From the NCBI GenBank assembly GCA_001643675.2, contig LSRY02000039.1, positions 682,001 to 746,000 of the forward strand: a stretch of 64,000 nucleotides of DNA. Reading direction: 5' to 3'. Every line of letters begins with the position of its first letter. Position 1 is the first letter of the stretch. The position numbers were made by a program, and so were the translations under genes. This stretch comes from Monocercomonoides exilis PA203. Lineage: Eukaryota; Protista; Preaxostyla. Of this stretch, positions 23,661 through 31,161 are shown one piece after another. The notes under the pieces were generated by a model. That model was given only the letters and a program-made list of their open reading frames with translations, searched no databases and was not told the DNA's origin.

Positions 23661-24072
23661 GAGAGTTGAATTCTTTTTGATTCATGCAGTGAATGTGTCA
23701 ATACAAACACATGTAGATGCACTAGAGAAATAGGAAATACTATCTGACACGATGATGCTTGTGATCTCGGGTCTCCAAGAAGCAAGGCACTCAAGGATCC
23801 AAGCAGAATATGGATTTGCTGCAGCCAAAACTCTTCGAGTGGAAACAAAGGACCCAATTGTCTCAAGTTAAAAATTGTCCAAGATCAAACCATTTCTCGA
23901 GGCAAGGAGAGCTCGATTGCAACCATCGCAGCACCAACTCCACTATAGAAGAAGATTTCTTCGGCTTCCGGCCCGAAGCATCGGGCCTGCCCAGTTCCGT
24001 CCGAGAACATCAGCCAGACAACAGCGACAAACAGGGAAATGGTTCAGAAGCCAGAAGACATCCAAAATTTAA
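23661..24072 (+). pseudogene. DIRS gag-like ORF, 3' part
   Basis: RVEFFLIHAVNVSIQTHVDALEK*EILSDTMMLVISGLQEARHSRIQAEYGFAAAKTLRVETKDPIVSS*KLSKIKPFLEARR..., ending in an Arg-rich tail just before RT. Confidence 0.65.
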
Positions 24073-24074
24073 TA

Positions 24075-25140
24075 TGAGGCAGGACTCAGATGTTTGCACA
24101 GGAATTGAGGAGCATTGGAGTAAAGAATACAACAACGTTTAACGTTCGCCCAGTTAGGAAAGGGAAATCCGTGAAAGAAAAGTTAATGAAGGAGGAATAT
24201 TTGCGAAGAGGCTTCATTGGCACCAGAAAGGAAGAAGAAGAGTGTGCCAAATGGATACAGGAGAGTTTGTCCAACAACATCATATGCGAAATCAAAGAAG
24301 GAGAGAAAAAATGTTTAAACACTCTGTTCATTAGAAAGAAAAAGACGAGAAATATCAACAGATCCTCGATTGTTGCCCCTTGAACAAAGAAATAAAGGAC
24401 ATTCGCTTCAAATCCGAGGAACACAAAACACTTGAGAAGCTCCTCCGCAAGGACTATTATGCGGTTTCAATAGACCTCTCACAAGCCTATTTCCTTGTCC
24501 CCGTACACAAAGATTTCACTCCCTTCCTTGCTTTCGGCTTCGGAGAGAGGACATCCGCATTCAAAGGTCTCCCATTCAGTCACAAAGATGCTCCACGAAT
24601 ATTAACAAAGCTGATGAGGAAGGTTGTGCAGCAGGTTCGGAAAAGATGGAGGGTCAGATGCATGAATTATTTCTACGATATAATCATTTTGCACGAGGAC
24701 AAAGACGCCTTGCAGAAAGCAACAACAGAAATCGAAGACTGGTTCAACAATCTCGGACTTGTTGTAAACGAAGAGAAGAGCAGGTTGACTCCAAGAAAAA
24801 CGTTCTCCTTCCTTGGTTGGACATGGAACACGCGTGTGATGAAGGTCGCATTGGAGACGAAGCGCAGGTTATCGTTGCAGAAGAAGATAAAACGGTGGAT
24901 GAACTTTGTGTCGAAAAAAACATCGATCAATCCAAAAAAGTTAACATTATATGTTGGTATTATCAGCTTAACTCGATTCGTCTACGCAGACGCCTCTCTA
25001 CACATGAACAGACTATACAAGGAACTCAACAATGCAGTCAGGGAAACCGGATGGACTGGTGCGATGAATCTGAATCTCTCAATCAGGAAACAGATTCAAT
25101 ATTGGTAAACGAGACTGAGAGAGAAGGAGGAAAGACCTTG
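24075..25140 (+). pseudogene. DIRS reverse transcriptase (frameshifted, catalytic YxDD altered)
   Basis: GRTQMFAQELRSIG; KKDEKYQQILDCCPLNK; SIDLSQAYFLVPV; FKGLPFSHKDAPRILTK; NYFYDIII in place of YxDD; GLVVNEEKSRLTPRKTFSFLGWTW; frameshift near 24340. Confidence 0.92.
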
Positions 25141-28100
25141 GGCATATGTGTAAATTGTACCACTTTCAGTTTGCATTTTTTCAAAATTTGAATATTATAG
25201 CGTTAATCTACTCAATTTAACTAAGCGATTCAAGGAGGGAAATTTCGAAATTCGATTAAAAATTTTCTCTCTGAAATTCAAAAATTTCGACACCCATAAT
25301 ATTTTTATTTTGATCATATTTTATTGAAATTTCTTTTTCTTGCTTTACATAGTTCGAATGAATTAATCAATTCAATCGAACAAGATAAAATATAGTTTTT
25401 ATTGTTTGTCTCGATGAATATTTACCTATATTACTTTTTTCGTTGCTTATTTTAATTGATTTGATTATTTAATTATTCGTAAGTATTCGCGCAATTAAGG
25501 TTTTCACATTCAAGATATAATATATATCAACTTATATGAAAGGAATTAACATGATTGGCTAGAAAAATATTTATAATAATAAGATTTTTATATGTATTTC
25601 ATAATTATTGATTTATATTCTATTTTTGGTAATGTATTCGTTGGAACTGGGTGAATTTCTGTTTATGAAAGGATGAAGGAAAAGCTGGATTGGGGCAGAT
25701 GTATTTGTTGAGTGAGGTAAAGGAGCAGTTGGCATTTGGAAAGGAGAGGAAAGAAGAGGGAGATGGAGAACATTGGGATGGTATGGAGCTTGTTGCAACA
25801 AGAGAGGGAAGATAAAGGAAGGAGAGCATTTGAATGATATTATGCAATGATTGGGATGTCGCGGGATGTCTTCGAAAATTCACAAAAAATACTTTATTTT
25901 TTGTGGATAACCTTCAAATGCTGTATTTTATTTTTTTAATAATCCACATTGTTATTTTCTTTTACATTCCATCTTCTTTTTCGTTCATTGCTGTTTGCGG
26001 TTTGTTATTGTTTAAACAATTTTTCATCACTGTTTTTAACAAAGCATTCACAACAAGCTCAATAATAACAATGCACACATGTTTTATTTTTTCTTTGGAA
26101 AGCTGCTGACGTAAGCCGATACAATTATTAAAGATGAAAGTGCGAATTAGTGAAAACTTGCACAAATAAAAAACAATCAATTCAATTATTCTAAATTTTT
26201 AAAGAATTTATAAAAAAAAGATAAAAAAATAGCAATGAATAAATTGGAATTTCAAATAATTTGGAAAAAAAATTGCAAAACTGGTTCTAAAAATTGTTTC
26301 TGCCTGGATCAGGAATTATGTACCACTCTATCTACGGTGTGTGATTAGATATTTGGGTGCAGAGCTCAAATCTATTTTTTTTTTCTTTAATAGCTATTAT
26401 TAGAAACTGTGGTGGAGTGGGTACAAATAGCATATCCAAGATTGGATCCACTCCTTAAGACCTGAAATCAACCGTTATTTTAGCCAATATAATTATTTTG
26501 ACTCCAATAGACATCACAAACACATTCTGTGATGAATTTCTTGCAGCATAGTTAAAGATTTAAAAAGCGAACTTGTTCCAATCATACTCAATTCCTTCCC
26601 TCTTCCTGTTATTATCATCTATTTTTCACCAATATTGATCTTCGTCCCTTCGCTCACTTGCCTCTCCCTCAGCAACGTTATTGTTGAGCTCAGCTGCGCC
26701 AGACTCACTCCCACTGCATGCCCTACTGTCTTGCAAGGTGCTGACTCGCTCATCCCACAAAGATTGTTTGCGTCATCCCCACTCACCCCAACATACCGAT
26801 CTTTCATCCCTTTCTTCAGCCAGACCCTTTTTTCTGTGTTCTGATAATTCCAACTACCAGAATAATATCCGTGGCATACTCTCGTATCATTGCTGTTCGT
26901 TGTATATGATTCATAGAATGGGTTATTCGAGGAAAAGAGATTGTTATTGTATTGAAAACAAACATCGTGGCCAAATGGAGTGGAAGCGTTGCAACTGCAA
27001 TCGTGGAAGAAGAAGAAATAGCAATAAATATTGTAACTTGGGGCTGTTGATTGATATGGATCAAATCTCATTCCTCCACCATATGACACTGCTGAGCACG
27101 AAATAAACTGGAGGCTCCTCATTTTGAATGCTGCTGGAACATTGTAACAATACATCCCTCCGCCATAAGAATTTGTAAGAGAACACGAAGTGAATGAGCA
27201 CTCAAACACACAAGCGCTCTCCCCTTTACCACTTTCTGTTCCAATGCAGTTAGATCCGGAAGTATTAAAAGTGTGAAGATAAAGTCCTCCTCCTTAGCCA
27301 TAAGAAGAACATTTTTGAAATTCACATCCGCTGATCCGAACACATGATGAAATCACATAAATACACATCCCTCCGCCACATTGATTTTGCGCGGTGCATG
27401 AGTTGAACGAATTGTTTTCAATTTCAACAGATTTGATTTTTGCACACATAACTCCCCCTCCATCGTAATGGGCATAACAATCATTAAATGAGCAGTGCTT
27501 AATAGAAACTGATGCGTTTGATTGACTGTGCATGCAGATAGCCCCGCCATTTGAAGCAATGTCTTCCCATTTATTTTCTGTTGCTGTTGTCCTCGATCCG
27601 TTCCACTCGCACCAAATGAATGAATTAGCTCCATTGGTTGTTGTGTTTTGTCTCACTGGCTTTAATGGTACCTCTGCAGTTCCTTTACATTCAACATTTC
27701 TTGTCCGACAACATTTAATAAATGAGGTGTTTGAGGCAGTCAGAAAGGCAAAGGGGTTGTTGAGGGAAGGGACAATTCCGCCATCATACACATCACATAC
27801 TGATGAAAATGAGCAACTATTCATAAAACTTGATGTTTGGGTCGACGTTGTTGTTGGAGATGGGCAATCTGAAGATGCTGTTGAGATATTGAAAAATGAT
27901 AATTTGGAGAGTGAAACAAAGGAAATGGAGGGCGATAAGAAGAATGGGGAAGAAGATGAGATACGCGATTCTCTCACTGAAATTCTTCATTTTTTGCCTC
28001 CTTCTCTTCCCCATGCCTCTTAGTGCTATATCGTATAATATCCCAATGTAGCTGTATCCATTTTCCTGCTTCTTCTTCTGCTGCTTCCGAAAAGATTTTT

Positions 28101-29139
28101 GTTAGAAAAATTCCACAAAAATTTCTTTCCCCATTCACTCCATTTTTTTCTGTTCCCTCATTCTGCCAAACACTCTTCGGCTGCTGATTTCTCATAATTT
28201 TTCCCAGGAATGCTCATAAAAAAGGCAGTGCTTCCACATCCCATGTTTCATGCTCCCCCAGCGCTTCTCATAACACCTGATCGCATCACACATCAATCAA
28301 ATAAAAAAAATACAAATACAAATAAAAATAAAAAATGATATATGAAGAATATGAACAAACAAGAATAAAATACCTCCACAAATCTTCATTTCCCTTCACT
28401 CCCCTCATCCCCTGTTTGCTTCTCTCCAATTAACTCTCACCCCAACATCATCCACTTCAAATACCACACACACCACGCCTTCGCCTTTCAAATCCAATTC
28501 CAAATAAAAAAATAATATGTTGTTTTCACTCGCTCTTCAATTGCCCATTCAACCTCACTCTCACCATTCTTCTCTTCCCTTCTTCCTCCATCCAGTCATC
28601 AATCCAAATAAATGCAGTTGACACACGATCTTCATTTTGTTTCAAACCTTTCAAATGTAGTTCAAATAAAATAAGAGATAAAACAGCATGAAAAAAAGTC
28701 AACAAGCAATTAAAATTTATTTGCATTCTTGCACACGTTTATTTCCATTATTGCTTCGAAGGTGTGACAGCGATATTATACATTATTTTATTAAAACGGT
28801 AGCATCCTGAATTTATTGAATTTTTATAAATAAGCAACGAAAAAAGTAATATAGGTAAATATTCATCGAGACAAACAATAAAAACTATATTTTATCTTGT
28901 TCGATTGAATTGATTAATTCATTCGAACTATGTAAAGCAAGAAAAAGAAATTTCAATAAAATATGATCAAAATAAAAATATTATGGGTGTCGAAATTTTT
29001 GAATTTCAGAGAGAAAATTTTTAATCGAATTTCGAAATTTCCCTCCTTGAATCGCTTAGTTAAATTGAGTAGATTAACGCTATAATATTCAAATTTTGAA
29101 AAAATGCAAACTGAAAGTGGTACAATTTACACCTATGCC
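25141..29139. mobile_element. 4.0-kb non-autonomous DNA transposon with 312-bp TIRs and 8-bp TSD, carrying a surface-protein gene fragment
   Basis: 25141-25452 is the near-perfect reverse complement of 28828-29139 (GGCATA(T/G)GTGTAAATTGTACC..., one mismatch seen); TSD AGACCTTG at 25133-25140 and 29140-29147. Confidence 0.95.
26560..27980 (-). pseudogene. Cys-rich beta-helix-like surface protein family fragment
   Basis: ORFs 27294-27977 and 26619-27209 are in one frame with a single TAA between them; motifs SVCDVYDGGIVPSLNN, FIWCEWNGS, SNGGAICM, YGGGMYC, YCYFFFFHDC, LCGMSESAPCKTVGHAV. Confidence 0.8.
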
Positions 29140-29147
29140 AGACCTTG

Positions 29148-29960
29148 GGTGAAGTTTGCAATTCCAGACGCGATGTTGACAACCGATGCTGCACCCCGGG
29201 CCTGCGGTGAAACCCTTTGAATAGGCAGCTCTCTGTACCACTTCCATCAAGCTTTCAATCGAGTATTCTTCAACGAGTCATCCAATTTCAAGGAGATGTT
29301 GGTTGTCCTTTTGGCTCTCAAACATTTTCGCTATCTCATAGGCAAACACAACGCCCGAAGGATCCTTCTGAGATCTGACAACATTGCTGTTGCATACGAC
29401 ATCAATCGTTGGACAGCGGGAAAGAATCTCCTGTCTCTTCTGATGAAGATCAGACAAACGACAACTGAACGGAACATTCAACTGAAAGCAATTTATCTCC
29501 CAGGAGCAAAGAACACGACAGCGGATGCCTTTTCAAGAATTCAACGTACAGGAGATTACGAGATCATAGACGAAGCATTAAGAGAGCTAGAAAAACGACT
29601 GAGTCTCACAATCGAACAGTACGCTTTCACCAACGGATGAAACTACAAGGCTGCAATCTGGTTTGGGTTAGGAAGCACGATGTTGGAAGACGTGCTTCAA
29701 GCGGATTGGATCACAGCGATCATTCTGGTTCACTCTCCCGTTCCTCTGATTCTTCTATTCTTCAAGAAGATTTAGGAAGAACAAGCGAGAGCAGTGATTC
29801 TGCCTCCAGCATGGAGGAACCAGATTTGGATCTAGCTGCTAGTGGAGATGTCAACACTTTGCGTAAAACAAAACAATTCTAACAAGGTTTTGAAAGCGGG
29901 ACCGGGCCTAAAGAAGACAGGAGCCTCACTTCTCCCGGGTGATCGCTTGGCTGTAAGACT
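29148..29960 (+). pseudogene. DIRS RNase H followed by methyltransferase-like domain
   Basis: LTTDAAPRACG, SSNFKEMLVV, LRSDNIAVAYDINR, YLPGAKNTTADAFSR (RNase H); then DVLQADW..LVHSPVPLILLFFKKI*EEQARAVILPPAWRNQIW (DIRS MT-like); same frame as RT once the insertion is removed. Confidence 0.88.
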
Positions 29961-29984
29961 CAACCGGTTGCGCAGAAAGGAAAG

Positions 29985-31161
29985 CAATGGTGGAACAGCG
30001 GACTTCGGAGATGCAATGTTCCCGAAGCAATTATCAATGAAGCTAAAAATAGTGAATCGACTTCAACTTGGACAGCCTACACATTTGGATTCGCTCATTT
30101 TGCCCAGGCCTGGACTGAGGAAAATTGTGGAGAATTTCCACAAGACTTCGTGGAGTGATGTCGAATGTGTGCCATGCTTTTTGTCAAACAAAAGGAAAAG
30201 GGATTTCCCTACACATGCTTGTGCGAAACGAGATTCGCAATTTCTCTATTCTCAATAATTATTTGTGGAGAAGACATTGAACAAGTCCCAATTATGAAGA
30301 CAATCTTCCTCTCCTTCCACCGTTCTCATGTTCCATTAAAACCAGACACAGATATGTGTTCGCCCACGTTGGTCTTCGATTTCTGCAATTCACGGCCTTA
30401 CAATATTGATCTATCCTTCTATGAACTTACAGTGAAGTGTAAAATGTTTTGCGTGTAATTCACAGCATGCCGCTTCCACGAACTTGAACAACTATCGATG
30501 AGCAAATTTATATTCTACAACGATGCCATCCACCTCCGCACTCACTTGAAAACATCAATTCCCCGAGTTATCGAATAATTCATTTCATAGGAGATGACGA
30601 TGAAAAAATCTTCCAGCAAGAACCGTCAACTGCCTTTGGGAAAGAGTTTAAAGAACACACGAATCGAGAGACACCTTTCTTCTGAACACGACGAATCACA
30701 CACCGCTGAAGACTTCAGGAATTAAAAAACTGGCAAAACTCGGAATGACACAAGTGGGGATTTCACAGGAGTTCAGACCTACACAATCAAGCATGCAGCC
30801 ATTCCCGCCTTAATCTTGAAGGGAGTACCGGAAGTGCTGATAGCGAGACATGCTCGCCTATCCCCGACAGCTCACACTCCACCGCGCTCCTACGTTTGAG
30901 CCCACTTTTCATCAGACATGGTCCACGTACTGGTCACTTTTCGACAGGAAGATCAAACCGCATGTGTTTCTTTCAACTGCCTATCCACTGCCCAAATGCC
31001 ATTTCTCCCAGCCTCCGCCTCGCTGGAAACAACAAACCTCTATTCAAGAACAACTATGTTCCCACGAACACCCATTACTGAACTTAACAACGAACTCAAC
31101 TCTCAAATTCCAAGCTCACAGACAGTGAAACCTGCAAGTGATCGCAGCAGAATTGAATATA
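29985..31161 (+). pseudogene. DIRS tyrosine recombinase (frameshifted)
   Basis: FTACRFHEL (box I Arg), LKTS, GISQEFRP/YTIKHAA (box II-like), ARHARLSPTAHTPPRSY (catalytic Tyr region); the C-terminal tail plausibly continues at 45622-45677. Confidence 0.8.

Follow-up and report, generated by a model that had tools for sequence, protein, structure and literature searches.

A non-autonomous Merlin transposon of Monocercomonoides exilis carrying a receptor-head cassette that exchanges sequence with cassettes elsewhere in the genome

The locus at 25141-29139 of the Monocercomonoides exilis window studied here (the whole 64-kb stretch of DNA that was analysed, i.e. G000:C35:682001-746000) is a 3,999-bp non-autonomous Merlin (IS1595-like) transposon, the interior of which consists mostly of a host-derived cassette unit coding for part of a giant receptor-kinase-like protein. 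Searches of the 82.3-Mb, 101-contig M. exilis assembly (G000; C numbers denote its contigs and L numbers individual loci) reveal that the element belongs to a family with no fewer than 20 collinear members, the majority of which have 8-bp target-site duplications (TSDs), and that the cargo of the elements and the cassettes present in arrays elsewhere in the genome exchange sequence. The account that we favor, with a probability of about 0.85 for it as a whole, is that a non-autonomous Merlin element captured a receptor-head cassette once, in the ancestor of the family, that the cargo has since been overwritten in patches, and that the two arms of its terminal inverted repeats (TIRs) are homogenized with one another.

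Element boundaries and Merlin affiliation

A repeat search within 24000-30500 returned a single long inverted pair, the arms of which (25141-25452 on the plus strand and 28828-29139 on the minus strand) are 312 nt each and separated by a gap of 3,375 nt. The arms match at 311 of 312 positions (99.7%), in agreement with a preliminary description of this DNA, which had reported near-perfect TIRs of this length with one mismatch; the mismatch is at position 7 from the tip, where the left arm has T and the right arm G. Both ends of the element start GGCATA, and perfect copies of the TSD AGACCTTG are present at 25133-25140 and 29140-29147. When up to three mismatches are allowed, the genome contains 54 occurrences of the terminal 28-mer and none of the same sequence read backwards, which excludes a chance origin of the termini. 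The target of the insertion is a degenerate retroelement with ~10-17 other copies, 67-87% identical to the flanks (24640-25140 and 29140-29640), five of which (on C69, C2, C13, C80 and C48) serve as paralogous empty sites. At all five, the left-flank and right-flank matches overlap by exactly 8 bp, so the TSD is 8 bp long, as had been proposed, and the length of 9 bp that had been considered possible is dismissed. With its boundaries fixed by these empty sites, 25141-29139 is confirmed as a genuine TIR element.

The element holds no transposase remnant, as had been noted from its sequence; a tblastn search with the transposase of the cognate element L047, described below, gave a best E of 2.7. 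No copy of the family gave a tblastn match to this transposase at E <= 1e-3, and the other open reading frames (ORFs) of L047 likewise leave no trace in them.

Three longer elements in the genome resemble the window family solely in the outer ~126 bp of the TIR, where identity is 91-94%. The best partner among them, L047 (G000:C40:833747-840620), measures 6,874 bp and has TIRs of 207 bp that are 96% identical, as well as a perfect TSD, CACAAGAA. Its terminal 124-126 bp are 93% identical to those of the window element, and the 28-mer at the right end of the window element, which is the family consensus, is identical to that at both ends of L047; the left end of the window element has one mismatch, i.e. 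T in place of the consensus G at position 7. A 513-aa ORF (L047:543-2084), starting 243 bp from the left end of L047, matches the DDE_Tnp_IS1595 domain (PF12762) with E = 4.1e-15 and 56.5 bits, against a cut-off of 27. A CxxC..CxxC motif is visible in the protein sequence, as are D, D and E, each in a setting that we take to be a Merlin block. L047 contains the sole intact copy of the cognate transposase, its nearest relatives (81-89% identical) carrying stops and the next class being at most 53% identical.

A TIR-matching element with a transposase, as the preliminary description envisaged, is therefore present, and the earlier choice between Merlin and MULE (Mutator-like element) can be made. 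Because the only transposase found between these termini has a DDE_Tnp_IS1595 domain and because the TSD is 8 bp, we assign the window element to Merlin and not to MULE; the 5'-GG start of its TIRs is also that of Merlin. The presence of one intact cognate transposase in the genome is consistent with the suggestion that the element may still be mobilisable.

Merlin elements have been published from Monocercomonoides sp. PA203, with >100 copies, at least seven families (F1-F7), 8-bp TSDs and 5'-GG TIR starts (PMC8101967). Genome-wide, we found at least 575 candidate loci for DDE_Tnp_IS1595; all 150 of the 150 that were scored lie above the Pfam cut-off, and many contain open frames of 300-670 codons. 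This number of candidates far exceeds the '>100 copies' published from an older assembly (PMC8101967). Two 3.3-kb elements, L050 (G000:C9:1028279-1031615) and L051 (G000:C40:559945-563277), have the same terminal motif as the window family and perfect 8-bp TSDs; their interior is unrelated and has neither a long ORF nor receptor homology, so that the two make up a further non-autonomous offshoot of this Merlin lineage. On C74, a fragment of a Merlin transposase of another family (G000:C74:81348-81704) begins exactly where an 11.5-kb copy of the autonomous element ends, a junction that suggests insertion of one Merlin into another.

The element family and the age of the insertion

A census of the TIR returned at least 40 scored matches among 69 candidates, and these pair into ~20 elements of 3.7-4.8 kb, together with a 6.35-kb element and a copy of 1.17 kb with an internal deletion. 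Sixteen copies were retrieved, the full-length ones being collinear with the window element from end to end at 71-87% identity. The TSD is perfect over 8 bp in nine copies (L031, L033, L037, L038, L040, L041, L042, L043/L053, which are one locus, and the window element), is one mismatch off in L032, L034 and an additional collinear copy, L052, and is decayed or ambiguous in L035, L036, L039 and L044. Its length is 8 bp in every informative copy, and no target-site consensus is apparent across the TSDs of the family. Perfect 8-bp TSDs are also present in 13 other elements that have this terminus, nine of which are collinear copies of the family. The family thus consists of transposase-free elements with multiple copies of the same layout, each with its own TSD, bearing a host-gene fragment that is also found outside the element. 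This supports the earlier description of a Pack-type element bearing a surface-protein gene fragment; as set out below, the cargo is homologous to the receptor-type protein P0127. The 6.35-kb copy, L039 (G000:C7:1247970-1254323), is longer on account of ~2.2 kb of additional sequence in the left interior (L039:2168-4378), and its cargo ORF is intact (MONOS_4821).

The near-perfect TIRs had been taken as the mark of a young insertion, a deduction that comparison of the copies does not sustain. In 11 of the 13 paired copies the arms are 97-100% identical to each other, although identity to the nearest other copy is 76-98% (mean 74-85%), i.e. these copies are 2-24% away from every other copy. The arms of L035 are 100% alike, with the nearest other copy at 84%, and those of L052 are 99.4% alike, with the nearest at 76%. 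Because arms are alike even in copies that are far from all others, the two arms evidently co-evolve, either by conversion within a copy or within master lineages, and we infer that arm-to-arm homogenization keeps them alike. As a family-wide property, the near-perfect TIRs give no estimate of the age of the insertion. In L041 (G000:C80:880644-885297) and L042 (G000:C36:882093-886655) the arms are 74-77% alike, yet both copies have perfect 8-bp TSDs and conserved, matching 28-bp tips, which suggests that only the tips are required for transposition. These two copies resemble recombinant elements that still moved as units.

The indicators of age for the window copy are its perfect TSD, a single nonsense codon and a backbone divergence of ~2.4% from its nearest relatives. 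These are consistent with a fairly recent insertion, yet not with a demonstration that it is the youngest; hence, of the proposal that this is the most recent large insertion in the window, the recent appearance stands and the ranking does not.

A receptor-head cassette and its exchange with array cassettes

The captured coding fragment (26544-28010, minus strand) lies in one frame running from 28010 or 27926 to 26544. A single internal TAA (27294-27296, read on the complement) precedes the point at 26619-26621 where the frame closes; the coding fragment recognized previously is thus real. Related loci are abundant: the first 227 codons have at least 1,850 candidates in the genome, and the following 196 codons at least 1,957. 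Full-length members of the family are single open frames of 2,300-3,700 codons. One of these encodes P0127, a 2,728-aa protein from a single 2,741-codon frame at C34:377408-385591, with a PK_Tyr_Ser-Thr kinase domain at residues 2564-2659. The cargo corresponds to aa 247-710 of P0127 (51% identity, E = 5e-134), or to 133-631 of P0121, and lacks the N terminus of the family, the stalk and the kinase domain, i.e. it is not a complete gene. Tyrosine-kinase-like proteins are the largest family of the M. exilis genome and overlap unclassified repeats (PMC6759080, PMC8767320), and kinase-ending genes of the P0127 type fit this published family.

The intact ORF of L033, a sister copy, was modelled with AlphaFold; the mean predicted local distance difference test score is 72, with values >85 across most of residues 150-440. 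VIA-align places the model with right-handed parallel beta-helix proteins, with Z scores of up to 18.9 and a root mean square deviation of 3.4 A over 247 residues, all 50 of the top 50 rows having that fold. Foldseek against the PDB returned nothing significant for the same model (best E = 0.016), and Pfam gave only a sub-threshold Beta_helix match for the cargo. The cargo is a beta-helix ectodomain 'head' of a giant receptor-kinase-like family, truncated at both ends. The L033 ORF is 100% identical to MONOS_11206, and all 120 relatives listed for it are from M. exilis. Intact cargo frames are present in two copies (L033, i.e. MONOS_11206, and L039, i.e. MONOS_4821); stops or frameshifts are present in 16 of the 18 distinct copies examined, including the window element.

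The remainder of the interior, described earlier as other unrelated fragments, proves to be mostly the flanks of the same captured unit. The 5' flank of the cassette lies at 28020-28612 (minus strand). It shares 85-89% identity with the sequence immediately upstream of ~46 cassettes, both in arrays on C80, C53 and C71 and in element copies, and no other part of the element is as evenly conserved among family members. The piece of 273 bp at 25691-25963 (minus strand) recurs downstream of ~20 non-element cassettes, with the ~660-bp spacing of the window element at C23:58621 and C34:626384 and a spacing of ~1,080 bp in the C42 arrays. Because both flanks also adjoin non-element cassettes, one captured, host-derived cassette unit (about 25691-28612) accounts for ~2.9 kb of the 3.4-kb interior. 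On either side of it, 25453-25690 matches copies of the family only, and 28613-28827 lies past the end of cassette homology (28612) and has a divergence that follows the backbone. Upstream of the element, the target retroelement retains a reverse-transcriptase ORF (24380-25108, plus strand; RVT_1, E = 2e-21). No other members of the receptor family were found in the 64-kb window.

Most relatives of the cargo are not full-length genes, but frames of 400-800 codons clustered on C80, C42, C53 and C71, often as inverted pairs. These clusters (1.15-1.96 Mb on C80) contain hundreds of head cassettes, many in inverted pairs with identical scores located 4-12 kb apart, e.g. C80:1286962(+)/1293448(-). 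Genome searches with the TIR and the 28-mer found no TIRs of the window family among them.

The autonomous element L047 itself carries a 4.4-kb fragment of a giant-receptor stalk behind its transposase gene (L047:2362-6735, minus strand), corresponding to aa 719-2182 of P0129 at 49% identity (tblastn). This fragment, divided between an 808-aa and a 537-aa ORF, is kept at 60-86% in two damaged sister copies. Pfam searches with ORF2 and ORF3 of L047 gave nothing credible, and a custom head profile reached only ~10 bits. Since the autonomous element also bears receptor sequence, the carriage of receptor pieces seems to be a habit of this Merlin lineage.

All copies have the same layout, and the capture therefore belongs to the ancestor of the family and not to the window copy, ~20 copies having the same collinear interior. 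The backbone and the cargo of these copies have diverged very differently. By Kimura two-parameter distance, the window element and its closest copy, L031, differ by 0.025 in the TIRs, 0.07 in the left interior and 0.04 in the right interior, compared with 0.25, 0.36-0.42 and 0.33-0.40, respectively, for the distant copies L035, L037 and L038. For the cargo coding sequence, the distance to L031 is 0.40 and that to the distant copies 0.35-0.41; thus among the closest copies, backbones ~2.5% apart contain coding sequences that are 25-40% apart. The 5' flank of the cassette follows neither pattern, with distances of 0.165 to L031 and 0.135-0.205 to the distant copies; in eight of nine aligned copies it is 0.12-0.2 (L042, 0.27), independent of backbone distance.

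Protein trees comparing 16 element cargoes with the proteins of the four array contigs, from which proteins annotated from element copies were left out, place the cargoes among the array cassettes. The element label needs 13 changes on the tree in each half of the cargo, compared with means of 14.4-14.9 after shuffling. Monophyly of the element cargoes is rejected in both the N-terminal half (difference in log-likelihood 263, approximately unbiased test p = 3.9e-4) and the C-terminal half (422, p = 4.7e-67). Grouping of the cargoes of the window element, L031 and L032, the backbones of which are 97-98% identical, is also rejected (p = 0.018). The two halves of the window cargo have different nearest relatives, the first at C80:1.27-1.33 Mb and the second in the C42 arrays or at C80:1.93 Mb. 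A single recent parent gene, of the kind sought for 26560-27980, was not found in the genome: the best matches over the whole length are 77-80% identical in DNA, with element copies and non-element genes interleaved.

The scale of the exchange is seen in a patch of 80 consecutive residues (approximately 27318-27557, minus strand, as mapped via the L033 frame) that is 100% identical to P0066, the product of an array gene at G000:C80:1277068-1278504, with flanking sides at 79% and 58%. The sister copies L031, L032 and L033 each have ~20 differences inside this run; L045 has the patch too, and its DNA is 95% identical to the window element in one 150-bp island (27391-27540). These results reveal that element cargo and array cassettes exchange sequence, a patchy overwriting that the preliminary description had missed. 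Because the tracts of identity are short, ectopic gene conversion, as opposed to the swap of a whole unit, is probably the mechanism, a deduction made from sequence comparison.

Proposed history, alternatives and comparison with known systems

In the history that we propose, the ~2.9-kb cassette unit was captured once, in the family ancestor, and the family then spread to at least 20 sites. The capture itself would have come about through template switching while an excision gap was being repaired, the route suggested for Pack-type elements, and movement would occur only in trans via the cognate transposase of L047. The window copy entered an old retroelement by cut-and-paste insertion, giving rise to the 8-bp TSD. 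The cargo would subsequently have been overwritten repeatedly, in patches, by ectopic gene conversion with hundreds of array cassettes elsewhere, possibly while gaps left by excision were repaired; the 5' flank and the repeat blocks, both conserved, would likely act as homology anchors that favor conversion. Arm-to-arm homogenization would have kept the two 312-bp arms alike.

Several points weigh against this history. The high arm identity could in part reflect recent insertions of separate master lineages, although these would still require the arms to co-evolve, and mobilization in trans by the L047 transposase is deduced from the common termini only. The alignment for the trees was anchored on the L033 ORF with insertions dropped and was searched in 'quick' mode; 'non-element' proteins were defined by contig, such that some could sit in other transposon families; and the cargo donors were compared as proteins only. 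The exchange itself may have run from array to element or from element to array.

An account in which the same backbone took up different head cassettes many times independently, by acquisition of whole cassettes in gap repair, accommodates the polyphyly of the element cargoes and the uncoupling of cargo distance from backbone distance. We nonetheless consider it quite unlikely, given that cargo boundaries and the order of parts do not differ among the full-length copies and that identity shifts in short patches, as with the 80-residue run between sides of 79% and 58% and the 150-bp island in L045. That the interior is instead a gene specific to the element, and not captured host DNA, is very improbable: all copies have the same type of interior, and L033 and L039 keep open frames that are annotated as genes, but the cargo has homology to an inner N-terminal region of 2,700-aa receptors encoded in a single frame, lacks their N terminus, stalk and kinase, and has stops or frameshifts in most copies, whereas hundreds of homologous cassettes, with flanks in common with it, have no such TIRs nearby. 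An identical interior with no full-length host parent had been named in advance as grounds for the latter account; the copies do have the same collinear interior, but full-length host relatives exist. Least probable of all, to the point of being scarcely tenable, is that the element derives from a MULE or hAT transposon. MULEs, too, typically have long TIRs with a GG start, and an 8-bp TSD also fits hAT; however, the only transposase found between these termini is of the IS1595 type, and all informative copies have TSDs of 8 bp, not the 9-11 bp of MULEs. Merlin elements with 8-bp TSDs are, moreover, already published from this organism (PMC8101967).

It is also possible, though unlikely, that the cargo is retained because it is useful, i.e. 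that the elements are dispersed donors of head cassettes for receptor diversification and that the 5' flank is a functional signal. The flank is 82-89% identical in eight of nine aligned copies (L042, 78%) regardless of backbone distance, two cargoes are intact, and exchange with array cassettes does occur. Against this stand the stops or frameshifts in 16 of 18 copies, including the window element, and the fact that exchange has been shown with array cassettes and not with a full-length gene; conservation of the flank is equally explained by steady homogenization against a large pool of cassettes. A broader proposal, which we regard as speculative and rather doubtful, is that the Merlin elements are the mobile arm of a genome-wide gene-conversion network that reshuffles the receptor ectodomain, with the 5' flank being a homology anchor or a functional signal. 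If this is correct, the elements, which hold heads and, in the case of the autonomous form, pieces of stalk, would be more than passive carriers, and the network would scatter and reshuffle the variable ectodomain that belongs to the organism's largest receptor family.

Returning to the history favored here, i.e. one ancestral capture followed by patchy overwriting, the window family resembles the Merlin superfamily (Feschotte 2004) and the M. exilis families F1-F7 (PMC8101967) in its 5'-GG TIRs, 8-bp TSD and the DDE_Tnp_IS1595 transposase of its cognate element. It differs from the published M. exilis families, which have TIRs of 23-29 bp and contain a transposase only (PMC8101967), in that its TIRs are 207-312 bp long, its non-autonomous form bears 2.9 kb of host gene sequence and its autonomous form a 4.4-kb receptor fragment. 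The terminus GGCATAGGTGTAAATTG is absent from the searchable part of the text of the Merlin supplement of PMC8101967.

With the plant Pack-MULE, Pack-CACTA and Pack-TYPE elements (PMC8903248, PMC6379663, PMC5861414), the window family has in common that non-autonomous TIR elements without a transposase contain host-gene fragments and transposed after capture, as seen from multiple copies with TSDs. In contrast to them, it is a Merlin family in a metamonad protist, with one type of cargo per family, taken from a single huge gene family, whereas plant Pack-type cargo consists of mixed fragments of several genes; further, its cargo keeps exchanging sequence with paralogues. Documentation of gene capture and shuffling by transposons of the cut-and-paste type comes mainly from plant MULE, CACTA and hAT elements, and from Helitrons. 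Among the papers that we searched, none linked Merlin with Pack-type gene capture. The window family provides a clear case of gene capture for the Merlin superfamily, with a metamonad protist as host, together with a cognate transposase and empty sites that prove insertion.

Galileo of Drosophila is a long-TIR, foldback-type transposon in which the TIRs of an element are homogenized with each other, and the window family is similar in that arms within a copy are more alike than arms of different copies. It differs from the Galileo type in belonging to another superfamily and in that its arms are just 312 bp long, without internal repeats. Since homogenization can maintain long, near-perfect TIRs, such TIRs cannot be used to date an insertion.

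The carriage of head cassettes helps to explain the 'unclassified repeat' fraction, overlapping the kinase family, that makes up ~35% of the M. exilis assembly (PMC8767320). The exchange of sequence between cargo and cassettes resembles ectopic gene conversion in multigene families of surface proteins, in which short identical tracts likewise occur between paralogues that are 60-80% identical and have conserved flanks. A captured fragment of a large gene family that keeps being overwritten will defeat a search for a single parent. Unlike in such surface-protein families, one partner in the exchange lies inside a mobile element, so that converted cassettes can reach new sites in the genome.

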